Below are positions 1-16,600 of a stretch of 49,648 nt of DNA, one piece after another. A model generated the notes under the pieces. It was not told where the DNA came from. It worked only from the letters and a program-made list of their open reading frames with translations, and did not search any database. Where the stretch lies: positions 1 through 49,648 of the forward strand of contig QPMI01000323.1 of NCBI GenBank assembly GCA_004431415.1, written 5' to 3'. The position numbers and the translations under genes are program-made. Position 1 is the first letter of the stretch, and every line of letters begins with the position of its first letter. The stretch is from Cyanophora paradoxa CCMP329 (taxonomy: Eukaryota > Plantae > Glaucophyta).

Positions 1-1566
1 AGAAGAACTGGAGCCTCTGCGCCGCCCGCTCCTGCTCCTCCTGGCTCGCCCCGACCCCCTCCCTCGCGCCGGGCGGCCGGGGCTCGCCGGCTGCGGCTCG
101 GGCCTCGCCGGCGCGGCGGAGGCGGTAGCGCTTCTGGAGGAGGGTCGCGGCGCGCTGCAGGCGCCCCATGCGCCGCATGCGCTCCTCCGCCTGCCGCAGG
201 ATCTCCTGCGCCACCAGCACCGCCTGCGCCCGGCCCGCATCAGCCCGCTTGCCGTCCGCAAGGAGGGCGCGGGGATGCGCACGCGGCAGACGCGGCGCCA
301 GCGGCGGCGCCGGCGGTAGCGGCGGAAGGCGCGCTGTATGAGCGTCGCAGCATCGCCGGGGTCGACATCCGGCCCCCTGTGCCGGCCCGCCCCGCCCCCG
401 CGTCGGCCCCCTCGCCCGCCCGACCGCACGGCTCGCGCTCGCCGCCCCTGAAGACGCTCTCGGCGAGGCGAGCGGGAAGGGGGCGGGGGCGGGGGCGGGG
501 GATGCGGGCGCACGGCTCGGGGCGGCGGCGCTGGCGGAAGCGGCGGGCGAGTCGGGCGAGGGCGGCGCGGTGGCGGTCGGAGAGGTGGCCGTGGCGGCCG
601 CCGCCCCGGGGTCTCCAGCTCGCTCTCCCGCCCCTCCCCGTCCGAGCCCTCCGACTGGGGCCCAGAGGCGCACCCCACCGGCCCCCGCAGCCCCGGCCCC
701 GGCCCCGGCGACGGCGGCGTGCACGAGCGCTGGCTCCCGCCGGTCCGCAGCAGCGGCGTGCGGCCGCCGAGCGACCCCCGCCCGCTGCTGATCCCCGTGG
801 CCGGCGCCATGGCCGGCGCGGCGGCGGCGGCTGGCGCCTCGTGCGAAGAGAAGTCGCTTGCCAGCGCCACCGTGAGCTCCTGCCGCGCGCGACCGGCGTC
901 TCAGAGGAGAAGAGCGGCGGCGGAGTGAGGCGCCGCGCATGCGCACCATGCGGAGCTGCTCGATCTCAGCCTCCACTTTCGCCAGCGATGCTCGGCGCGC
1001 CTCGCGCCTTTCTCCTGCCCGCCACCCTCTCTCGTCGTTGACTTCGCGCTCCTGCTTCTCCCTGTGTCGTCTGGGCACCGCGTGAGCGCACGTATGCAAG
1101 CGCACGTGTGCGCACTGCTGCAGAGGCTGTACCTGAACAGCCTCTGGATTGCGACCGCTGCGCGGTGTGGCCGCTGAGCAGAATCATCTTCACGAGCCTC
1201 GTACGCGCCCCGCCGCTCCCGCTCGCGGCGCTTTAAGGACCGAAGGTACGCAGCCTCGAGCTCCTGCACTGTGTCCTTACTGCTTTGTTCTTTGATGCGA
1301 AGCTGCTCGAGCCATTCGACGCCTTCGCGCAATTGTGTGCGAAGAGAAGCTGACCGGCGCCGCCAAGCAGCGCGGTCCAGGCTGGTGCCATCATCGATAA
1401 AAAAGGCATCTGAAGGCGCTGCTGATGCTAGCTCCCTGCGTCGCGCTATGTGCGCAACAGCAGCGGCCGCGGCAGAGGAGGAGCTGGATCCCGCACGTAG
1501 AGGTGTGCTTGTTTCAAAGTAGGCCGGCAGCGGCAGCCGCGCGCCGCTGTGGCCGGCTGCCATCAA
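1..1566 (-). CDS. Multi-exon IQ-motif (calmodulin-binding-like) protein; 3' end runs off the window
   Basis: First exon MMAAGHSG...AAVAIQRLFR, then a GT-AG intron (1132-1071). Later exons give further IQ-like motifs DAATLIQRAFRRYRRRR (~350-300) and RAATLLQKRYRLRR (~155-115). Confidence 0.7.
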
Positions 1567-1750: not shown

Positions 1751-4700
1751 ATGTATGCGGCAAGCGCCGGTGCCGGCCCAGGCGGGGGCGTGACCACCAG
1801 GGAGATCGACTTTGCGAAAGTAGAGAGAACTATCATCCCCGAGGAGCGCAGCTGCTACCTCTTTGAGCGGGACAACCTCCTTAGGCGGCTCAGCGTTTGG
1901 TTCTGCACCAGTCTGACATATGAAGCCTTTAATATAGCGGCAATAGTGATAATATGCTCATCCATCGCTCTGGACGGCGCCAGCAGGTGCGCTCGCCGCC
2001 GAATCATCGGAGCTCCGGGCGCGCTGGCTTAGGCAGGGCGGGCGCGCCGCGCGCAACGCGCGGGGGAGGATAGTCGTCATGCACCGAACTTTCTTCCCGC
2101 GCCGGGGCGCGCGGGGCGGCGCCGCGGTCGGAAATTTCCGCTCGGAGCGTTGGGCTGGGTCCTAGCCTGCGAGGAGCGTGTCGAGGTTGGGGCGGGGCGC
2201 GCAGGGGCGGGGTCTGGTTCGTGCTGGAGATCCTCGTGGACTGCTACTTCACGCTGGAGATGGTCGCGCAGGTCCCCGCGCGCTCCTCCGCGCGCGCCCC
2301 GCCCCGCTCCGCCCCGGCCGAGCCGCCCGCCAGGTCATCGCCCTCGGCCTCGTCATGCACCCCAACTCGTACCTCCGCAGCGGCTGGCACTGGTCAGCCG
2401 GCGCCCGGCGCGCGGGGCGCTGGCGGGGCTGAGAGGGGGCGGGTGGCGGCAGGCTGGACGTCATTGTGGTGGTCCTGGGCTGGCTCGCCCTCTCCCCGAG
2501 CGTCGGCAACTTCACCAGCATCCGCGTCCTCCGCGTTCGCCCGCCCCCTGCCGCGCCGCGCGCACGGGGGGCCGAGGCGGGGGACCCGGGGCGGGGCAGA
2601 CGCTGCGGACGATGAAGGCGATCACGGGGGTGCGCTCGGTGCGCGTCTTCGCGTACGCCATCGTCTCCTCCCTCCCGCTCCTCCTCCAGTGCCTCGTCCA
2701 GCTCGGTCCGCCCGCCCGCCCCCATCCCTCGGCGCGCCCGCTTCGACGAGCGCCCCCCCCCCCCTTCCCCGCAGCGTTCTTCTTCGTGCTCTTCGGGATC
2801 GTCGGGGTGAACGTGTTCGGGGGATCGTTCCGCTGGCGCGTCGTCGACGGCCTCACGGGGCGACCGCTCCTCGGCGACGACCCCGAGGCGCGCCCCGTGC
2901 CCCCTCCCCCCCCCCTCTCCCCCCCTCACGCTCCTCCCCTGTCCCCTGCAGATCCCGAGGTTCCTCTGCTCAAACGAGGCGGGCTCGCGGAGGCCCGACC
3001 CGGGCGCCCTCTGCGTGCCCGCCTCCAACCCCACCTGGGACTTCTCCTCGGTGCCCCGCTCCCCAGGGCGGCCCCTCCCCACCCCGCTCATCCCCCGCTT
3101 CCCTCAGCACGACGACATCCTCAAGAGCTGGCTTATTCTGTGGCAGTGCATCACGCAGTCATCCTGGGTCCGCACTCCCGTCTTTCTTCTCGTCCGCCCC
3201 TGTGCCCCTCTTTCCACCCTGACGCCCCCCCAGGAGCTGTTCATGTTGTGCGTCGGAGGTGTCGCCCGTTCCCCAATCCTCTGGGGTCTGACGCCGTACC
3301 CCCCACCTGCAGCTGGACGTGGGACGCGCAGGGGGCCGGCTCGATCCTGTACTACTGGCTCGTCATCCTTCTGGGAGCCTTCCTCGTCATCAACCTCATG
3401 CTTCTCGTCGTGCACGGTGCCCCTCGCCACATCCCTGCCTGCCCTTTCCACCCCTGATCCCCTCCCTCGAACAGACACGTACATCGACGTGGCGCGTGCG
3501 GAAAAGCGGCGACGGGTACAGCTCCTCCAGGCGCATCGCGCCCGCGTCGAGGAGAGCTTCCAATGTGCGCACCCCTCCCCTCCCCCTCCCGTCCCGACCC
3601 GACCCCCTCGCAGCCGGCGGCTCCCTGCGCGCCCTCCGGCGGTACCTCTCGTGGTCGCACTGGCGCGGCCTCTGGGTCCGCAGGGGTACGCGCCGCTCTC
3701 TCCCAATCCCCTCCCCCCCCCTCACCCGCCGGGCAGGGGGCGACGCGAGCATGGACGAGCCGGAGGGGCTGGCGTGGGCGCGCTGGCTCTACTCCCGCCC
3801 CGCCTACGCCCTCGCGAGGGACTGCGCCACCTGGTGCGCCCCCCGCCCCCCGCGCCTTCCGCGCCGCCTCCTCCGCCCCGACGCCCGCGCGCGCGCAGGC
3901 TCGGCGTCGCGGTGCTCGTGTCGCACTCGGCCGAGTCGAGCGATTCCGCCTCCCGCTTCTTCGGTGCCCCGCCCCCTCTCCTTCTTCCTTTGCTCCCTCC
4001 TCGCCCGCCCATCGCCCCGCCCCGCCGCAGAGGCCGGCAACTACATCGCCGTGGTCTCCTACGCGCTGGACTCGCTCGTCTGCCTCGCCGCCCTGGGCCC
4101 CCGCCCCTTCGTCCGCGTGCGCCCCCGCCCCCGCCTCGCTCGCCCCCCTGCCGCCTTCTCCCCGGAGCCTCCTCACGGGCGCGGGCCCCCGCAGGACCTC
4201 TACAACCTGTCCGACGCCGCCGTCGCCATGCTGGGGATCGCCCAGGTGCCCTCGCCTGCGGCGCCACGCCGCAAGGGCTCGCCCGAGCGGCCCCCGCAGG
4301 CGTGCATCCCCAACGAGCCGCGGAAGTACCTGTACCCCTTCCGCCTGCTCCGCGTCGTCCGCCTGGCCCGCCGCTGCCGCTTCCAGGTGCCCCGGCACCC
4401 GCGCCCCGCCCGACTCGGGGCTCGAGCCCGAGCGGTGCCGGCAGCGCGTGCGCGAGGCGGTCGTCGACACGACGCGCTCCATGCGCGCCGTGGTGCCCTT
4501 CTTTCCTCTTCTCCCGCGCCCCCCCCCCCCCCGCCCCCCCCCCCCCCCCTCCCCCCAACCGCCCTCGGCCAGGCGGGGTTCATCCCGACGCTGCTCGTGT
4601 ACGTGCTGGTGGCCGCCCTCTTCGGCATGCAGCTGGTACACCCCCCCCCCCCCCCCCTCCGCCCATTCCGCACCCCCCTTCCCGCCCCGACCGGCCCGCC

Positions 4701-5905
4701 CAGTTCCGCGGGACTTTTCCCGAGGCGGCGCTGGCGAACTACGACTCCTTCTTCAGCGGCGCCGTCCTCACCACCTTCCAGGCCCGCCCGCCCCGCCCCG
4801 CCCCGTCTTGCCCTGCCCTCTCATCGCGGGGGGGACCCCTCTCGCACGGCAGGTCCTCACCATGGACGACTGGAACACGGGTGGGCCCTCCTCCCTCCCG
4901 CCACCGCCCTCCCGCCCGGCGACACCTGACGCGCCTCCCCCGCCCCGTCGCAGTGATGTGGAGCGCGATGCGGGGCGCCGGCGGGTGGGCCCCCGTCTAC
5001 TTCATCCTCGTCATCGCCGTCGGCAACTGTGCGCCGTCTGCTGAATGCTGGAGCCGCCGCCTGGCTCGGCGTGCAGCGCGGCTGCGGGCCGCGCGCTGAC
5101 CCGGCGGGGGGCAGACATCGTGCTGAACGGGCTCGTCGCGATCCTCATCGACTCCCTCTTCTCCGGCTTCGGGCGCCACCAGACCGAGTTCGAGGTGCGC
5201 GCGGCCGCCCCTTCCCCTCCCCGCCCCGCCCCTCTCCGAAGCGGGGGCGGCGCGCAGCCGCACGATGCTCGGGCGGACCCCCTCGTCAAGGCGACGCGGG
5301 GCGCCTGGCGGGCCAGCCACGTGCGCACCCCCCTGCAGCTCCCTTCACTCGCCCGACTCGGCGCGCGTCAGACCTCGATGGTCGGGCTCGCCTCCTCGCG
5401 CTCCTTCGCCGACTGGGCCCTCCGCGAGGAGCGCCGCCGCAAGGCGCGCCTCCCGCTCAAAAGGACGGCATCACTCCTCGGCTCGAAGCTGAGTCGTTCG
5501 GGCTCGCGCAGTGGGAGAGCCGCGGGGCGCGGGCGGCGGCGATGGCGGTGGACGAGCGCGACCGGACGCTCCGGAGGGACGCCCTCCGCGCCGCCGTCCT
5601 CGAGGTCCCGCCTCCAGCGCGCTCCCGCGCCCCCTCGCCCATCACTGACCTCGCCTTCGCTGGCGCAGAACGCGCGGCGGGTGGCCCACGCCTCGTTCCC
5701 CCACCCCTGCTGCGTCTTCGCCTTCGGCCCCGAGGCGGAGCGGCTGCGCTCCGGCTGGCTCCGCCGCGCCTCCCTCGCCGGCGGCTCCTCGGGGCCGCAC
5801 CTCTCCCTCCCCGCCCTCGCCATGATGGCCCCGCGCCTGCGCTCCTGGGCCGCCCGCGCCCGCCAGCGCGTCCGCCAGCGCGGCGGCCTCCCGCCCTCCG
5901 CAACC

Positions 5906-5948
<43 letters not shown>

Positions 5949-8900
5949 GCGGGCCTTTCCGAAGCCCCTTTACGGCGAGGTCGCCCTGGGGGAGGTCCGG
6001 GTGACGGTGACGCAGCCGCTGGGGGCGCTGCGGCCGGCGCTGGCGCGGCCGGGCTCGGGCTCGGGGGCACCTCCCCCAGCGACGACTCGGACTGCGACTC
6101 CGGCCGCCCCGTGCCCCCCGCCGAGCTCCGCCACCCGTCGCCCCCCAGCGCCCTCAAGATCCTCCGGTGCCCGCCCCGCCCCCTCGCCCTCGTCCCGCCC
6201 CTCTGATCGGGGCGCGCCGGCAGGCCCGAGCCGACGCCGCGGGGCCCGGGGAGCCCCGTGCCGCACATCACCCGCTTCCCCGACTTCGCCGCCTCCGAGC
6301 CGATCCGGCCCGAGCCCGTGCGGCCCTTCCGCAGCGCCTCCTACCCCGCCACGCCCAGCGGCGCGGCCTCCCCCGCCGGCACCCCGCGCGGCCAGGGCGC
6401 GCCGGCCCCGTGGGACGAGCTGAGCGACGGCGGCGACGACTCGCCCCGGCGGCCGGCCCGTCCTACATGCCCCGCGGCGCGCCCTCGCCGGCGACGCGCG
6501 CTCCCTCGCCGCGACGCCCCACCGCCGGGCCTCCACCCCCCACCCGGCCAGGGCCCCGCCCCGTCGCCCTCGGGGCCCCCCTCTCGGGGGCGCTCCCCGG
6601 GCCTCCGCCTCCCCCTCTCCCCCATCCTCCTGGCCGGGCCCTCGCCCGATCTCGGGCCCGAGCGCGAGGCGGCGCCGGCGCCGCGGCGCTCCCTCTCCGT
6701 CCCTGCACGGCCCGTGCGGCCGGGCGACTGGGAGGCCCCCCCCGTCCTCATGGACCTCCGCGTGCACCACTTCCGCGCCGCCTTTGACCGCGACGACGCC
6801 TTCCGCGGGCCCCCGCCCCAGCGCCGCTCCTTCCCCGCCCCCGCCCGCCGCTCCCCGAGCGGCTACGAGTCGGAGGGCCCCGCATACGCGCAGGCCTCCT
6901 TCCCGTCGCCCCGGCCCCGGGCCGCAGCCTCCCCCTGGGGCCCCGGCCTCGGCGCGGCCGGCATCCGCGGCCCTTGGCCCGAGCGTCCCGCCGCACGCCA
7001 GCGCCTCGCCCCCGCAGCCCCCGCCGCGTACGCACCGCACGCCTCCGCGGGCGGGCGGGGGCCGCCGCCGGCCCCGGCGGGCTCGTACGGGGCGCCCCTG
7101 CAGCCGGCGTCGCTCCGCTGGGACCCGTCTCCCCGCCCCGAGCCGCCGGCCCCGCCGACCCCCGAGCGGCCTGCCGAGCGGGCGGCAAAGCCAGAGCCGC
7201 CACAGGCGAAGCCGCGGCGGGCGGCGGCGGAGGCGGGGACGGGCCTGCGGGCGCTGCTGGCGCGGCGGGCGGAGCGGCGGGCGGGCGGCGGGGGTCGGCG
7301 GGGGCGGTCGGGGGGGACCTGAGCAGCGGCTCGACGAGCAGCGGGAGCGGGGGCGGGAGCGGCGGGGCGCCACCCTCTCGACCTCGAGCAGCTCGGCCGT
7401 CCTCCTGGGCCCCCCGCCCCGCCCCCGGGCCGCCGCACCTCCGTGGCGGTCCTTGCGGCCGCCCTCGCGCCCCGCCCCCCGAGAAGCCAAAGCAGCAGCT
7501 CGCCCCGCCGGCGGCGCGGCGCGCGCACCTGGGGAGCACGCGCTCGAGCGTGGAGGACCGGCGCGGGGCCGTCTCGGGGCCCGGCGGGGGCGCCCCCGGC
7601 GGCGCCGGCTCCCACCGCGGCTCCATCCTCGACAGCGTGCGCCCCCCTCGCCTGCTTTCTTCCCCGCTGCCCTCTCTCCTCAGCTTCGGGGCGCAGGCGC
7701 TCCAGGTGGGGAAGAACGTGAAGGCGCAGGCCCTGCGCTGGACGGACCCGACGGCCCTCTTCGGGGCCAGCGCGGCGGCGAGCTCGCCCGCCAGGTCCCC
7801 CCCCGCCCCGCCCGGGCGCCCGGCCTGAGGCGTGCGGCGCAGGCGGCGGCGCGGGTGTGGATCACGGCGGGGTGGGAGGAGGAGGGCCCGGCGGGGGGCC
7901 CGAAGGTGGCGGCGGCGGGGGCGCGGCGGGAGGACGGGGACTGGCCCTACGACGCCTTCGAGCCGGCCTCCCTCGTCGAGTCCGCCGGCCCCGCCCCGCC
8001 CCCGCACACCCCCGCTCCGCCGATGCGACGCCGGCGCAGGTGGCGCGCCGGCTGGTCTCTCTTCCTCCTGCCCCCCGAGAGCCCCCTCCGGGCCCGCCTC
8101 GGGCGCCTCCTCGCCAGCCCCTGGACCGAGCGCCTCGTCCTCCTCCTCGTCGCCCTCAGGCACGCGCACGCACCTTGCTCGGCGGCCCCGCCCCGTGCGA
8201 CGCCCCGCCCCGCAGCACGCTCTGCCTCGCGGTGGACAACCCCTCGCTCGACGCCAACCCCGCCGCTCGCGAGGCCGGCCCCGCCCCGCGCCGCGCCGCG
8301 CCGGCCTCGGGGAGGGCGCTGCGCTCAGGCGGCGTGGCGCAGGCGCTGCACGTGGCGGACATCGTCTTCGCGGCGGCCTTCGCCCTCGAGGCCGCCCTCC
8401 GCATCCTCGTGCCCCCGCCCCGCCCCCCCAGCCCGAGGCCTCCTCCCGCCCGACGCCCCGGCGCCCCGCAGCACAAGGGCATGTTCCTCGACCGCGGCTC
8501 CTTCCTGAGGAGCGGCTGGAACGCCCTCGACTTCGTCGGTGCGCCCGCCCTTCCCTCCGCCCCCCGAGACCCCGCCCCGCACCCCCCCTGATCGAAACTG
8601 CACTCCGACGCCTCTGCGCGGGCAGTGTCGGGGACGCTGATCGCGTCGCTGGTGGGGGAGGCGGCGGGGGCGAGCCGCTCGACCGTGCAGACGCTGCGCG
8701 CCCTCCGCGCCCTCCGGCCCCTCCGCCTCCTCCCCCGCGTCAACGGCATGCGGGTCCGCCCCGCACCCCCCTCCCGCCCCATCCCGCCCCAGCCCGCCCC
8801 CCTCACGATCGTTTTTCTCCCCTAGATCGTCGTGGCGAGCCTCGTCCGGTCGGCGCCCGACGTCTTGCGGGTGTCCATGTGCGTCCCTGTACCCCCTCCC

Positions 8901-11900
8901 GCTCTTTCCCCCTCACTTTCTCCGCAGGATGACCGCTGTAGTATGGACGTTTTTCGCTACCCTGGGGCAGCAGGTGACCCGTACCCCTCCTGCGTCTTCT
9001 ACCCCCCAAAATCGCCAACCTTCTACCCCACTCCCCCCCCCCCCTCTACCCAGCTTTTTGCCGGGCGTTTCAAATATTGCAACGACACCACTGTACTCCT
9101 CCAGGTGCGCGGCGGTACCCGCGGCGCCCTCGCACCCCCATCTCTCTTCCACTGAACTCTCTTCCTCGCGAATCGCCAGTCGGAGTGCGTGGGGACGTAC
9201 CTGGACGCGGTGACGCGGTCGGAGCGGCCGCGCGAGTGGCTCTCCTTCCGCGACAACTTCGACTCATTCCCCGCCGCCGTCCGCCCCGCCCCCGTCCCCG
9301 CCCCCGCCGGGGCGCACCGGGGCCCGAGGGCGGGGTGGCGGCGGGGCGGCAGGTGCTGACGCTCTTCGAGCTGGCGATGCTGGAGGGGTGGACGGAGATC
9401 ATGCGCCGCGCCGCCGACAACGCGGGGGTGCGTGCCCCCCAGAGCCAGGCCACGAGAGAGCTCGCACGCTCCCACGGGAAGACTTCCTGGCCCAGATCGC
9501 CGGCCCCTAGCGCCCTCTTCTAGACGCGTGCCGCCGGGAGGGGCCCTCACGAGGGGGGCCGGGGCGCGGGGCAGGTGGAGAGCGCGCCCGTGAAGGAGGC
9601 GGACCGGGGGGCGTACGCCTTCTTCATCGCCTTCCTCATCGTCGGCGTGTACGGTGCGCGCGTCTCGGCCCGCGGCCCCCGCGCGGGCACGTGCGCACGC
9701 ACTCGCTGCCAGTCAACGCGTCCACTTCTCTTGACTATGGTCAAGCCGTTCAATTCTCTTAGAAGGAGGTTTCAGTGGCAGGAGTGTTGCGCGTGCCGTG
9801 GCCCTGCGCACCTGTCCGTCGGGTCTGAGCGGGGCCGGCGCAGTGGCGCTGAACTGGTACGTCTCGGCGACGGTGAACGCCATCGGGCGGGCGCAGGTGC
9901 GGGCGGCCCTCGCGGGGGGCGTGCTGGCGGGGGCGGGGGCGTGAGGGGCGGGGGCGGGCAGGCGACGCTGGAGGACAAGGGCCACCACCTCGCCCTCAAC
10001 TACGACCAGCGCTCCTGGAAGCAGGCCCGCCCCGCCCCGCCCCGCCCCGCCCCGCGCCCCTCTCGAGCGGGCGGGGGCGGGCGCTGACGGGGGCGGCGCG
10101 GGGGCAGATCCTGGCGCACGCGACCTCGATGGAGCTGCCGCGCCCGCGCCGGCGGGGGCGCCGCCGGGGGGCCCTCGTCCGCCTCGTCGAGCACCGCTGG
10201 CCCGCCCCGCCCCGCCCTGCGCCCCCTCGCCTCCCTCTGCCCCCGGCGAACCCCCTTGGCCTGCCGCGCAGGGTGGAGCCCGTCGTGGTCGCCCTCATCC
10301 TCGCCAACACCCTCGTCATGATGCTCCAGGCCCGCCCCCCCGCCCCAGCGGCGCGCCCCTTGGCGCCCGCTGAGGGGCTCTGGTGGGGGCGCAGCACGCG
10401 GACCAGGGGGCGACGTGGGACGCCGCCCTCCTCTGGGCCAACGCCGCCTTCGCCGCCCGTGCGGCCCCGGCCCCGACCCCCCCCCCCCCCCCCCCCCCGG
10501 CCCCGCCTCCTCACCGCCCCCGCAGTCTTCGTCGTCGAGTGCAGCCTGCGCCTCCTCGCCCACGGCCGGGTGCGCCGACCCCGCCGGCCCCGCGTTGGGA
10601 GGCGGGGGCGGGGGCGAGCGAGGGCGGGGGCAGGAGTACTTCGAGGACCCGTGGCGGGCGCTGGACTTCGCCGTCGTCCTCCTCTCCGCCCTCGGCCTGC
10701 CCCGCCGCCCCTCGAGCGCCCCCGACGCCGCCCCCTGACGCGGCCGCGCAGGCGTCGTGCTGGAGGCGGCCCTCACGCGCACCGCCGGCGCCCGCGTCGG
10801 CGCCGTGCGCCCCGCCCCCCGCCTCTCGCACCCGCGGGAGGGCCCAGCCGTGCTCACCCTCCCTCCCGGGCGCTGTCGGCCGCGGCAGGTGCGGGCCCTG
10901 CGGGTGCTGCGCCTCGCGAGGACCTTCCGCCTCTTCCGCCGCACCGCCGGCCTCATGACCCTCTTCCGCACCCTCGTGTCCGCCCCGCCCCGCCGCGCCG
11001 CGCCCCGCCGCGCCCTCCCCCGCGGGCCTCTGAGGGGCGGGGGCAGGATGTCGCTGCGGGCGCTGGCGAACGTCGGCTCCCTCCTCGCCCTCCTCTTCTT
11101 CGTCTACGGTGCCCACGCCGGGGCGCCCCGCCCCGCCGCCCCAGCGGGCCGAGCCGGGCGGCGCCGGCGCAGCGTGCTTCGGGGTGTCCCTCTTCGGGAC
11201 GATCCACAAGTCGGGCCGCCTCGACTACCACACCAACTTCGACAACGTCGGGTGCGCCCCGCCCCGGCCCCCTCTCCACGCCAGGCACGCGAGAAGACAG
11301 CGTCTGAGCGATACGAGAACGCCCCCCGCCCGCCTCCCGCCCCTGTCTGCGCTGCATTGCCTGAGGGCCCGCCCGCTGCGGCCCGCAGCTACGCCCTGCT
11401 GACCCTCTTCCGAATGGTGCGCCGCCCTTGCGCCCCTCCTTGCTCCCCCTCTGGGAAGGCGGGGGCCAAAGGCAGCGCCAACGCCGCCACGGCGCGCAGC
11501 TGACGACCGAGGGCTGGAACGACATCGTGCGCGGGGCCCGTCGCGCGGGGCCCCTCCGCGTGGCGGCCTCACCTCGGGGGGCAGATGTGGGACTGCACGA
11601 CGCCGCGGGAGTGCCCGAGAGACGCAGACTGCGGGCACGCGTGGGCGCCCCTCTACTTCGTCTCCTGGATGTTCCTCGCCCTCGTGCGCCCCCCCCCCCC
11701 CCCCCCCCCCCGCACCCGAAGGGGCCCGCCCCCTCTCCTCTCCCCATTCCACCTCGAGCCGCTTCAGAGGGACGCGAGCTCGCGCGAGCGTGCGAGCAGG
11801 GGGTTAGAGTGGCAGGCGGGGCGGGGTGCGCCGGGGGCCGCCCTGGGCGCTGACGCCGCCGCCCCGCCCCCGCGCAGACGCTGATGATGAACCTCTTCAT

Positions 11901-13503
11901 CGCCGCCATGCTCGAGTCCTTCGCCGGTGCGCCCGTTTCTTCGCAGGGGGCCCGCCCCCCGCGCCCCGCGCACCACGAGGCAGGCCGTATGAGATGGGCC
12001 GCAGTAGATGAGATTAGATCCGCACGGGGCCCGGGACGCACCGCGCTAGACTCGATCCACATCGATTGGCGGGAGCGGGGAGGCGGGGCGCGGGCCTCGG
12101 GGGGCCCCGCCCCGCCGACTCTGCTGACTGCTCGCGGCAGAGAACATCCGGCAGCGCTTCTACGCCGTGCGCCACAGGTGCCGCCTCCCCCTCCGCCCCT
12201 CCCCCATCTCCCGACCCGATTCCGCTTTGCAGCGACGTGGCGGCCTTTCTGGAGGCGTGGGCGCGCTACGACCCCGCCGCATCCGGCTCCATCTCCGTCG
12301 CCGTCCGCCTTCGCCGGCCCCTCCGCCCCGCCCTGGGGCCCCCTCGGCCGCGCTCAGGGGCGGGGCTGGCGGGGCAGGGCGCGCTGCCGGATCTGCTGCG
12401 GGACATCGGCAAGCCGCTCGGCATCTCCCCCAGCGCCCTCCCGCAGGTGCCGGCCCGGCCCCGCCGCCGCCTGCACGCGGGGGGCGCGTCAAGGCGGCCT
12501 CAGGACGTGCTGCTCTTCATCCGCTCCCTCCGCGTCCCGACCCTCGAGGGCCGCGTCCACGTGCGCCGCGCCCCGCCCACGCCCCCTCCACCAGCGCCCC
12601 CGCGCACCCCGCGTGCATCCGCCGGCTGGGGCCGGCGCGCGTCTGCCCTCGGGGCGCGCCGCCCGACGCCGGGGCCGGGGGCGCAGTTCCGGGTGCTGCT
12701 GCACGCGCTCATCGACCGCGCGTACGAGACGCGCCTCGTCCGCCCCGTGCCCCGCGTCTTCCGCGAGGTCCCCTCGCCCCCCGCCCCGAGCTCCAAGCAC
12801 CCTCGAGCTCGAGCTTAGATTCGGGCGGCCTACATCAAGCGCACGCCGGAGCTGAGGCGGCTGGCGGAGGCGGCGGCGGCGGGGCAGCGCATCGAGACGG
12901 TCGCCGAGCTCTACTCCGCCGCCCGCATCCAGGCCCGCCGCGGCCCCCCTCCCCGCTCTCCCCCCCACTGACTCGCCCTCGCGCTCCGGAGCAGGCGGCG
13001 TGGCGGGGCGCGATCATGCGGGCGCGGCTCTCGCAGGGGCGGCGGCGGCGGGGCTCGGGGGCGCACGCGAGGGCCCCCGCGGGGAGTCGCCGGGGGCGAC
13101 CGCGTCGGCCTCCGAGTCGACGTCGCTGGCGCCCCTGCGCCTCGCCCCGCCCGTCCTCGCCCCGCAGCCCCGCGCCGTGCGCCCCGCCCCGCCCCTCCCC
13201 GCGGCCCCGCGGCGGCGGCGCTGACGCGCGGCGCAGTCGCGGGGCTCGGCGGCCGAGCGGCGCACCTCCTCCCGCGCCTCCGACTCCGACGGCGACCCCG
13301 CGGCCGAGGCCGGCCCTGGCGGCGGCGGCGGGGCGGGCGGCGCGCCCCGGGGGCCCGCGGCGGCCCGCCCGGGCCCGGCCGCGCTGCCGCTGCTGCGCGG
13401 CGCGGTGCCGAAGTGGGGCGCGGAGGGCGCCCGCCCCGGGGAGCACGGGGGCGGGCGGCGGCCCTCGTGGGACCCCGTCCCCTTCCGCGGCATCGTCCTG
13501 TGA
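1751..13503 (+). CDS. Four-domain voltage-gated cation channel alpha subunit (Cav/Nav/NALCN superfamily), about 60 introns
   Basis: Four S4 segments after splicing: SIRVLRTLRTMK; FRLLRVVRLARR; LRALRALRPLRLLPR; RALRVLRLARTFRLFRR. Four pore loops: QCITQSSW, QVLTMDDW, ELAMLEGW, RMLTTEGW. S6 helices LVINLML, IVLNGLVAIL, LMMNLFIAAML. C-terminal EF-hand-like FLEAWARYDP and IQ motif AARIQAAWRG. Stop TGA at 13501-13503. Confidence 0.93.
5906..5948 (+). repeat. (CCG)n trinucleotide repeat, ~14 units, in the channel domain II-III linker region
   Basis: Uninterrupted ccg run at 5906-5948. Confidence 0.85.
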
Positions 13504-13684
13504 GCGGCGTGTCCGCTGGCCTACTCGCGCAGTGCTTAAAACCAATTTATAAATACAGTAACTCGAATACGTACAACCCTAAAGCGTAGCTAGACTGTCG
13601 AAACCGGATCTCGCTGCTGCGCCGAATCCTCCCCCCATTGCGGGTACAGGCGAGAAATACAAACCCGCGAACCGCGGCCGCGCC

Positions 13685-16600
13685 ATGTGGCCGGAGCATC
13701 AGGTCCGCTGGGCCAGGTTGCGCAGCATGCCGCCACTTGAACCGCTCTGCTCAGGTTCTGGTGCGCGTCCGGCCGCCCTTGCGGACCGAGCTCGACTCGC
13801 TGGGCAACGCGCCGCCCGAAGTGGTGAGAGTCGAGCGTGACTTCCGCACGACCGACACCGCACGGGTCATCACGGTTGCTCGGGACCCCGTGCTCTTCGC
13901 CAGCGAGCAGGCGCCGCCAGCGGATCGCTTCTTCGCGGCACGCTTCTCGTTCGACCGCGTCTTTGACACAACGGTGTGCTAGCTATGCCACGCACCGCGC
14001 GTTTCCGCGGCTCACGCTGGACCCCGGCGCAGACGAGGCAGAAGACCGTCTATGCAGAGGCCTGTCGCCCCGTGGTCGAGGCCCTCTGCCAGGGCCGCAG
14101 CGGCTGCGTCGTTGCCTTCGGCGGCATCGGCTGCGGACGTCACTACACGCTCCTCAGCGAGGCCGGGACGGTCGACAGCGAGCGCCGCGGCCTCGCCCCG
14201 CGCGCCGTCGAGCACATCCTCGATTGTGCGGGCGCAGCTTGAAATTCCCGCGTCCGTGCGTGGCCGGCTGGCTCACGCCGTGCGCAGACACGGAGCGGCT
14301 GAAGGGGCGGCGGCGTTGCGTGCTGCGGGCCTCGCTGGTGCGCGTGCAGGGCGAGCTGGTGGTCGACGCGGCGACGAACGCGGCGGTCAAAGTGCGGGAA
14401 GACGCCGTCGCCGGCGGCGTGCTCCTGCAGGGCGCCAGCGAGCACGTCATCGCCAGCCCCGACGACCTGCACGCCCTGCTCGCCCGCGGCCGCTCCGCCG
14501 CCGCGCCGGCCGGGGGCGGGCGGGCAGCGCCGGCGCGGCGCGCGCACGAAGTCCTCACGCTCACCCTCGAGCAGTGGGACGACGACGGTCCGCCGGGGCG
14601 GGCGCTCGCCGGTCTACCCCGCTCTCCTCGGCCCTGACGGGCCGCTGCAGGGATGGGCCAGGGAGGCGACGCGACGCCGCGCTCGAGCAGCGAGGGGCCG
14701 CGCACGCCGCGGCGGGCCGTGCACTGGGCGGGCCCGGGGGCGTGGCGAGCGGCGACGGCGCCGCGGGTGACGAGCCGGCTGCAGCTGGCGTGCCTCTCGC
14801 CGCCGGGGCGGGACGGGACGGGCGCCGAGCGCGCCTTCAACGCCCTCGCCTCCGTCCTCCTCGCCTCCCACCAGCGGCCCCCGGCCGCCCACGTCCCCTT
14901 CCGCGACTCCGCCCTCACCCGCCTCCTCCGCGACTGGTCCCCTCCCCGTCCCCTGCTTCCCCCGCTCTCGACCCTCGCTCACTCCGCCCGGCCGGCAGCG
15001 TGGGCCCGGGGACGGCGGTGGTGGCGGTGGCGGGGGTGTGCGGGGCGGCGGGGCGGCGGGAGGAGACGCTGGGGACGCTCAAGTACGCGGCGCTGCTGCG
15101 CCACGCCCTCTCCGGCCACTCCGCCGACGGCCGCCACCGCACTTCCCCGCCCTCCCACGCACGCCGCCCCGCACGCCCTCGCCCCTGCGGCCGCCGCGCC
15201 ACGCGGCGCTCGGCCCGCCGCAGCCCCTCTCGCCCCGCTCCGCCGGCACGCCGCGCTCCGCCGGGACGCCCCGCTCCTCGGCGACGCCGCCCCGCGTCTC
15301 CGTCACCCCACCCCGCGTCTCCGTGGGGACCTCCCCCCGGGCCCCCTCCGTGGCGGCTTCCGTGGCGAGCAGCCGGCGGGAGGCGCGCCGCGACTCGGAG
15401 CTCGCCAACGTGGCCCCCGTGCCCTCGCCGGTCCCCGTCCCCGCCCCGCCCCACCCCGAGGAGGAGGCCCCCGCGCGGGGCATGCGCGCCGCCCTCGCCG
15501 TGCGTCCTTTCCTCCGCCTCGCCCCGCCCCTCCTCCGCCGCACCCCGAAGACGCCGGGCCGCGCAGGAGGCGCGCGGGAGATCGCGCGGCTGCTGCAGGC
15601 GCGGCGGGCGGCGGCCAGTGGCGGGGCCGAGCTGCACGGCGGGCGCCACGCGGCACTGCTCGACGCCGGCCCCGCGCCGCCGCTCTCGGCACCGCCCTCG
15701 CAGGGGCCTCGCGGGGGTCTCCCCCGTGCGCCAGGTGCCGCCCCTGCACGTCGAGGCCGCCGCCGCCGCCGCCGAGCCGGTGGGGTACGACGACGCCTCC
15801 GACGACGGACTCACCGCCGCGCGCCTGCACGCCGCCGCCGAGCGCCTCGCCGCACCGCGCGCCCCCGCCGGCCCCCTCGCCGACGCCCCGCTCGCCGCCG
15901 CCCGCGAGGCCCTCGCCGCCGCGCGCGCCGACCTTCACGCCGCCCAGGCCGACGCCGAGCGGTGCGCCGCGCCGCGCCGCGGGCGGCGTGGGCGGCGCAG
16001 CTGACGGGCGGGGGGGCGGGCAGGGCGGGGAGGGAGCGGGAGGGGGCGACGCGGGAGGCGGAGGCGGCGCGGGAGGCGGCGGAGCGCTCGAAGGGCCTCG
16101 CGGAGGCGCACGCCGCCGCCGCGCAGCGCGCCGAGGCCGAGCTCTCCGCCCTCCGCGCCGAGGCCGCCGCCCGGCGCACCGAGGCCGAGGCGGCAGCCGC
16201 CGCCGCCGCGCGCCAGGGCGAGGAGCGCGGCCGCGAGCTGCGCGCCGCGCTCGAGGCGGCGTCGCGCCTGCGGGCGGAGGTGGCGGCCGCGCAGGAGGCG
16301 ATGGAGCGTGCGCGGGCCGGCGAGGAGCGGGCGGAGGAGCGGGCGGCGGCGGCGGAGCAGGAGGCGGCGGCGCTGCGGGAGGCGCACCGGGAGGCCGTGG
16401 AGCGCGCGATGGGCGCCGCCGCGGAGGAGGCGGCGGCCCGCTCGGCGTCGCGGGTGGCGGCGCTGGAGGAGGAGCTGCGGGCGGCGCGGGCGGAGCTGGC
16501 GGGGGCGCTGCGGGCCCGCCCGCCGTCCCCGTCGAGGACGGACCGCTCCTCCGCGAGGCGCGCGCCGCGGCGGACGAGGCGCGGGAGGCGGCCGCGCGCG

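Follow-up and report, generated by a model that had tools for sequence, protein, structure and literature searches.

A probable four-domain voltage-gated cation channel gene with a Ser/Asp/Glu/Glu filter ring in Cyanophora paradoxa

The stretch of DNA analysed here, referred to as the window, comprises 49,648 nucleotides (nt) of contig QPMI01000323.1 of Cyanophora paradoxa CCMP329, and it carries a nuclear gene of a glaucophyte-type alga that probably is intact and codes for the pore-forming subunit of a voltage-gated cation channel with four domains, which is expected to be Ca2+-permeable. Fifty exons were modelled, of which 23 make up domains I-II (1751-5194) and 27 make up domains III-IV together with the beginning of the C-terminus (8041-12305), and the features placed on this chain are collected in Table 1. 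The exons are all in phase and without stops, and the encoded protein would have roughly 2,400 residues. The chain was built by coordinates and homology searches were run exon by exon; family placement is therefore coarse. Over most of the 49.6 kb the guanine plus cytosine (GC) content is 64-85%. Stops are rare in such GC-rich DNA and the domain III-IV exons have one off-frame that is likewise stop-free, so that weight was placed on phase consistency, periodicity and homology, and not on the open frame. The GC content at the three codon positions of the exons (GC1 0.62-0.69, GC2 0.47-0.49, GC3 0.93-0.97) is a strong coding signature, and the introns are 80% GC and 49% C. AT-rich dips occur only at ~1560-1930 and 13490-13570, with none within the gene.

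Table 1. Positions in the window of the channel gene, its parts and its neighbours
Feature	Position	Strand	Remarks
Whole four-domain channel gene	1751-13503	+	Start ATG at 1751; 3' end approximate, in the AT-richer dip at ~13490-13570
Domain I, S1-S6	1751-3416	+	10 exons; GT..AG introns, phases fit, no stops
Domain I exons	1751-1986, 2205-2271, 2334-2392, 2453-2534, 2600-2705, 2775-2896, 2952-3050, 3108-3167, 3234-3247, 3313-3416	+	
S4 of domain I	2453-2705	+	Two exons (..IRVLR then TLRTMKAITGVRSVRVF)
Domain I pore-loop exon	3108-3167	+	HDDILKSWLILWQCITQSSW; filter Ser, codon TCA, 3159-3161
Domain I loop T-Q-S-S-W	Ser 3159-3161		ACG CAG TCA TCC TGG
Micro-exon	3234-3247	+	14 nt (ELFM plus 2 nt); gives the +3 Glu and the start of the P2 helix
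I-II linker	3475-3833		Short, diverged
Domain II	3737-5194	+	11 exons; S4 4300-4386; pore loop 4704-4781 plus 4853-4880 (VLTMDDWNT)
Domain II filter	Asp 4865-4867; +1 Asp 4868-4870	+	
Domain II loop T-M-D-D-W	Asp 4865-4867		ACC ATG GAC GAC TGG
II-III linker	5195-8040	+	~2.85 kb; low-complexity, Ala/Pro/Arg/Gly/Ser-rich, up to 83% GC
Domain III	8041-9896	+	11 exons; S3-S4 8626-8753
Domain III pore-loop exon	9353-9427	+	VLTLFELAMLEGWTEIMRRAADNAG; filter Glu 9383-9385
Domain III loop M-L-E-G-W	Glu 9383-9385		ATG CTG GAG GGG TGG
III-IV linker	9962-10199	+	ATLEDKGHHLALNYDQRSWKQ then ILAHATSMELPRPRRRG..; LAL triplet 9989-9997
Domain IV	10272-11926	+	12 exons; S4 10889-10977; S6 11585-11683 plus 11878-11926
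Domain IV pore loop	11389-11416 plus 11500-11535	+	LTTEGWNDIVRG; filter Glu 11509-11511
Domain IV loop T-T-E-G-W	Glu 11509-11511		ACG ACC GAG GGC TGG
Proximal C-terminal domain	12141-12944	+	GPHH/EF-hand-like region, then IQ-like motif
GC-AG introns, first base	4782, 8160, 10025, 10200, 10330, 10695, 11536		4 of the 7 share GCCCGC
Very small exons	3234-3247 (14 nt), 4853-4880 (28), 11389-11416 (28), 11500-11535 (36), 12141-12177 (37)		
Upstream open reading frame	901-1566	-	221 codons, in a less GC-rich stretch
Downstream gene	13638-14640	+	Kinesin-motor-like N-terminus by eye

A first-pass annotation of this DNA had described a four-domain channel, and this was borne out: four repeats of six transmembrane (TM) segments follow one another in order and single exons match Cav, Nav and NALCN channels. 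Against the PDB, the domain III pore-loop exon alone matched NALCN, Cav1, Cav2 and Cav3 and, more weakly, Nav and CatSper (best expectation value (E) 5e-4), scoring 22.2 bits on NALCN vs 22.0 bits on Cav1.2, and its Glu lies over the Glu that Cav1.2 contributes to the filter ring and over the ring Lys of domain III of NALCN. The domain III S3-S4 exon fell on domain III of Cav2.2 (residues 1228-1265, E 9e-5) and then on Cav1, Cav3 and Nav, and the PDB matches of the domain III S4 exon were Cav and Nav, not NALCN. Pfam Ion_trans matched S5 of domain I, S4 of domain III, the domain III pore loop and S4 of domain IV, in the right order and at the proper profile positions, with profile positions 88-122 on the S4 exons of both domains III and IV; each match is below the gathering score, which is to be expected of pieces only 20-40 residues long. 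When reference channels were compared with the exons by tblastn, Cav2-type proteins formed the best co-linear chains, at ~300 bits, and ciliate-type channels also chained co-linearly. The charged S4 segments that had been claimed for all four domains are indeed seen, each a ladder of 4-6 Arg/Lys at every third position. Other pieces were silent in the PDB: the 20-residue domain I pore-loop exon alone gave no match and a read-through piece of domain II gave none at E < 1. A match of the domain IV read-through piece to designed armadillo repeats was rejected as spurious, as it arose via translated intron.

The first-pass annotation had read an S-D-E-E selectivity filter, and the four pore loops are present at exactly the codons it had given. 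MAFFT placed them in register on an invariant Trp, with the filter residue two before it and a ring column of S/D/E/E. That domain I aligns with Cav without a gap was likewise confirmed by tblastn, in which a 20-residue stretch of Cav2.2 lies ungapped over HDDILKSWLILWQCITQSSW with Glu opposite the Ser, and a ciliate-type EEEE channel from a metagenome (locus L004) places TFQCATLEGW over LWQCITQSSW in the same register. A profile of 48 distinct domain I pore loops, run over the six frames of the whole window, found its best match at 3111-3167, ending on the Trp, with a weak score for a piece of only 20 residues (6.6 bits, E 0.58). A one-base sequencing error behind the Ser was rejected, since TCA is at least two changes away from any Glu or Asp codon. 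The ring holds no Lys, Arg or His. Above it lie Glu (+3) in domain I, Asn (+3) in domain II, Glu (+4) in domain III and Asp (+4) in domain IV. The earlier statement that domain I lacks the +4 Asp is therefore correct, but it had passed over the Glu at +3 (TQSSWE), which is placed as in domain I of Nav. Domain I is a mosaic in this respect, Cav-like in QCIT and Nav-like in TQxxWE.

An exhaustive HMMER scan of 1.8 billion representative proteins, with the read-through of domain II from S1 to S5 as query, returned a single match, the EukProt Cyanophora paradoxa protein tig00000254_g22449.t1 (here P0001; E 8e-6, 49% identity). Compared with single exons of domain II, P0001 is 45-76% identical per aligned exon. 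It is co-linear with these exons from S3 to the pore loop and has the same spacing at three junctions, so that the junctions and spacing of domain II agree with those of a spliced Cyanophora fragment; one shared junction, after ..TTFQ, is the GC-donor intron that follows 4781. At the ring position of domain II, P0001 likewise carries Asp, reading ..LLTLDQ where the channel gene reads VLTMDDW. It is a model of 150 residues that starts inside S3 of domain II and ends by reading into the intron after ..LLTLDQ, and its composition is far less biased towards GC than that of the channel gene. With the public model incomplete in this way, the four-domain channels of Cyanophora paradoxa are poorly annotated. 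Word searches with the domain I read-through piece and with P0001 gave no further relatives. Nine metagenome loci were found with P0001, and the three largest (L001, L002 and L004) encode EEEE channels; in tblastn the channels of L004 and L001 are co-linear with the domain I exons. All the protist and metagenome relatives with a readable domain I, including the nearest full-length ones recovered, have Glu there, which suggests that the Ser is derived and unusual among the relatives reached, a small sample that was not chosen for glaucophytes. Further non-canonical rings were seen among these protist sequences, with Gln at the domain II position (LLTIQSW, IMTSQNW) in L005 (~292), L008 (5910, 7260) and L009 (1482, 2832), and with Glu in domain I of L008 and L009. 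Between domain I and the I-II linker, the Ga0247837 contigs L001 (8619-8633) and L004 (8688-8702) each carry a 15-nt GTAAG..TAG intron. Stentor and other heterotrich ciliates have introns of this style, and the relatives of the L001 and L004 channels include a Stentor protein.

The splicing around the domain I pore loop was considered in detail. The junctions 3167/3234 and 3247/3313 proposed in the first-pass annotation have GT..AG ends and form the sole two-intron path that restores the frame of S6 of domain I, yielding TQSSWELFMFWTWDA. The flanks of the 14-nt exon (ccccccag before it and gtgcgtc after it) are the local consensus, and the loop that includes it (TQSSWELFMFWTWDA..) equals the Cav/Nav loop in length, residue for residue. 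There are other exons of 28-37 nt, and a 14-nt micro-exon thus fits the style of the gene. All single-intron alternatives that keep the frame were listed. Retention of 3168-3233 (66 nt) would keep the frame and place 22 extra residues behind the filter Trp, and a splice from 3167 to 3332 would lose the P2 helix; TQSSW is kept by every alternative that keeps a pore loop. It had been suggested that an alternative exon might supply an acidic residue at this position. None was found: the frames of 2890-3480 hold no acidic pore-loop-like peptide. A mutually exclusive exon such as NALCN and Cav3 use was rejected because the introns in 2890-3480, at only 55-66 nt, leave no room for one. That one of these alternatives is used in place of the micro-exon is one form of a wider explanation, in which the gene model is partly wrong; its other form is that domains I-II and III-IV belong to two separate genes. 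We consider this explanation, in any of its forms, to be very improbable. The splice alternatives do preserve the reading frame, but 3168-3233 begins with a typical GTCCGC donor, is C/T-rich in its body, ends in a CAG acceptor and has the median intron length of this gene, and it is the loop with the micro-exon that has the Cav/Nav length.

The case for two genes turns on the II-III linker, a low-complexity stretch of 2.85 kb without homology signal, and it gains from the fact that no public protein covers the gene. The linker nevertheless shows coding periodicity, each 150-nt bin having one frame with a GC3 of 0.86-1.0, and contains no 60-nt window below 58% GC, whereas both gene ends have such windows. 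Two separate two-domain genes were rejected on these two observations, the periodicity through the linker and the missing intergenic AT dip, which argue for a single polypeptide in which the region would be a long, disordered II-III linker. The ring is S/D/E/E in all of these versions of the gene. No Pfam match was obtained for the linker. It contains a stretch open in frame 0 at 6258-7322 (354 codons), which also has no Pfam match.

All 48 introns end in AG, 41 of them beginning with GT and seven with GC (Table 1), and their median length is 67 nt. Seven GC-AG introns among 48 would be an unusually high share, if it is found genome-wide. The pore loops of domains II and IV are each split over two exons.

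After domain IV, Pfam PF16905 (GPHH), the 'voltage-dependent L-type calcium channel, IQ-associated' domain, matched at 12246-12338 (E 1e-5; 25.7 bits vs a cut-off of 26.8). An IQ-like motif, ELYSAARIQARRG (AARIQARRG; ~12906-12944), was read by eye in frame 0, and the Ca_chan_IQ model of Pfam had no match. An in-frame stop at 12816-12818, between the EF-hand-like region and ELYSAARIQARRG, presumably lies within an intron; the exon chain ends at 12305. Another possibility is that the locus is a paralogue that is decaying or silent, on its way to becoming a pseudogene, and that the Ser is a loss-of-function change. The absence of the protein from public sets would fit with this, as would its high divergence, the failure of the domain II piece to find a PDB match being an example. 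However, 24 TM segments, the Asn positions of S6 and the Cys pairs of the extracellular loops are preserved across 50 in-phase exons, together with the S4 ladders, the putative GPHH region and the IQ-like motif; the codon-position bias is strong, and the domain II Asp is shared with P0001, a Cyanophora paralogue or orthologue. Decay is, in our estimation, the least probable of the explanations considered here.

Several points do weigh against an intact channel gene with a Ca2+-permeable product. The absence of stops is, taken alone, weak evidence in this DNA. Frame logic underlies the micro-exon, the seven GC donors and the continuity of the 2.85-kb linker. The product was not among the 1.8 billion representative proteins and is without independent annotation, so the gene appears to be publicly unannotated. 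In addition, filter rules drawn from animal channels are not always transferable, and the ion selectivity of the channel is here a prediction.

Of the known systems, the Cav1 and Cav2 channels (EEEE) are like the Cyanophora channel in their four repeats of six TM segments, in the P1 helix of domain I (..QCIT.., as in FQCITMEGW), in the LT.xDWN of domain II with its +1 Asp (TGEDW in the Cav references), in the xEGW of domains III and IV and perhaps in a GPHH region and IQ-like motif after domain IV. The Cyanophora channel differs from them in having Ser and Asp in the ring positions of domains I and II, a Glu at +3 instead of an Asp at +4 in domain I, and a very long, low-complexity II-III linker, and past the shared core no relationship to Cav1/Cav2 is detectable. 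From the EEDD ring of Cav3 the Cyanophora channel differs in having Ser in domain I and Glu in domains III and IV. Nav2-type DEEA channels share the combination of three acidic residues and one small neutral residue in the ring, as well as the TQxxWE of domain I, but their neutral residue is in domain IV and that of the Cyanophora channel in domain I. In Nav1 and Nav2 the domain II loop is shortened by one residue (LCGEW) and lacks the +1 Asp, whereas TMDDW is of full length; where these have Asp in domain I and Ala in domain IV, the Cyanophora channel has Ser and Glu. The domain I sequence of Nav proteins is TQD[YAS]WE, and from that of Nav1.9 (TQDSWE) the Cyanophora TQSSWE differs at the ring position only. 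The highest score of the domain III pore-loop exon is that on NALCN, by a hair, and some glaucophyte channels have been placed in clade A, the NALCN/Cch1 clade (PMC12412391), but NALCN has a Lys in the ring (EEKE/EKEE) and a charge-poor S4, while the Cyanophora channel has no Lys and four charged S4 segments. In the III-IV linker the triplet LAL, followed by N, stands 13 residues past the ..TVNAI of S6 in domain III, compared with 11 residues between ..IIDNF and the IFM-T of Nav (spacing counted manually only), and its context ..LALNYDQRSWKQ.. resembles ..IFMTEEQKKYY.. by eye.

The first-pass annotation had assumed that the domain I position is always acidic and had raised the prospect of an uncharacterised channel class. 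The first assumption applies to animal families only. In a survey of 277 four-domain channels EEEE was dominant, alongside 'a great variety' of filters, and protist filters with a neutral domain I, including A/G/K/E and S/S/K/E, were described (Pozdnyakov et al., 2018; PMC5824947). A neutral Ser in domain I is not enough for a new class, as such channels have been reported in protists (PMC5824947). As may also hold for the Cyanophora channel, these protist channels include lineage-specific clades outside Cav, Nav and NALCN and carry hydrophobic triplets resembling inactivation gates in their III-IV linkers; their neutral domain I filters carry Lys, however, whereas the Cyanophora ring is without a basic residue. 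The words Cyanophora and glaucophyte are absent from the text and the supplementary file of that survey (PMC5824947), and among the searchable papers none was found that combines 'SDEE' with 'selectivity filter'. The S/D/E/E pore variant appears to be undescribed, but it falls within the protist pore diversity that has already been catalogued. We propose that it belongs to a lineage-specific subfamily in which Ser may have taken the place of Glu in domain I, and Asp that of Glu in domain II.

With respect to function, the charged S4 segments would be expected to open the gate on depolarisation. The pore would be lined by the three ring carboxylates, the +1 Asp of domain II and, above the ring, Glu, Glu and Asp, and the channel would bind Ca2+ and let it through, probably with less affinity and a greater leak of monovalent ions than in an EEEE channel. 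Permeation of Ca2+ is expected because of the three ring carboxylates, the +1 Asp and the analogy with DEEA. The +1 Asp of domain II goes with Ca2+ selectivity in the protist survey (PMC5824947), a +1 Asp in domain II (or IV) has been tied to Ca2+ selectivity or Ca2+ block in an account that includes the animal-like rings EDEE and EEEE (Spafford, 2023; PMC10120453), and DEEA channels have been called Ca2+-selective in a study of NALCN and Cch1 (bioRxiv 10.1101/2025.04.04.647097). The +3 Glu of domain I, supplied by the micro-exon, may partly replace the missing charge, and the IQ-like motif suggests possible feedback through calmodulin. The altered selectivity that was predicted from the neutral Ser is possible, but on these grounds permeability to Ca2+ has at least an equal likelihood. 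An alternative explanation accepts the same gene and holds that, with the domain I carboxylate lost, it encodes a cation channel that is mainly monovalent (Na+/K+) or non-selective, a functionally distinct class. This is a possibility that we regard as doubtful but worth keeping in view. Only three of the ring residues are acidic, domain I is Nav-like around the filter (TQSSWE vs TQD[YAS]WE), and protist channels with a neutral domain I exist. Yet the ring is free of Lys, Arg and His, domain II retains the Ca2+-linked +1 Asp and is not shortened as in the LCGEW of Nav, and DEEA, with an equal charge count, is described as Ca2+-selective. On the basis of these comparisons we would expect a depolarisation-activated channel that still passes Ca2+, rather than a radically new class. 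Such a channel would, in a biflagellate alga, probably serve Ca2+ entry for flagellar or behavioural responses.

A more speculative proposal, which we put forward tentatively and think unlikely as it stands, is that S/D/E/E marks a glaucophyte-specific subfamily in which the hydroxyl of a conserved domain I Ser confers a profile of selectivity or block that no studied class has, for example that of a Ca2+-modulated monovalent channel. If this is true, it would be an independent route to non-EEEE selectivity beside DEKA and EEKE.

The channel gene is flanked on both sides by other reading frames (Table 1). The next gene downstream begins with a kinesin-motor-like N-terminus (..VLVRVRPPLRTELD.., ..FSFDRVFD..), the first open reading frame piece of which had no Pfam match, and the open reading frame upstream on the opposite strand had none either.

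A few animal rings (EEEE, EEDD, DEKA, DEEA and EEKE) are the usual basis for explaining selectivity in four-domain channels. The combination, in an apparently intact channel, of Ser in domain I, a Cav-type Asp-Asp in domain II and a Nav-type TQxxWE context provides a natural test of the weight of the domain I carboxylate and of the outer ring. Since the filters of protists are known to vary widely, the existence of such a pore is not surprising in kind. Glaucophytes form one of three lineages with primary plastids, and published surveys and public protein sets contain hardly any of their channels; the gene described here would fill a gap in our picture of Ca2+/Na+ signalling in flagellate algae.

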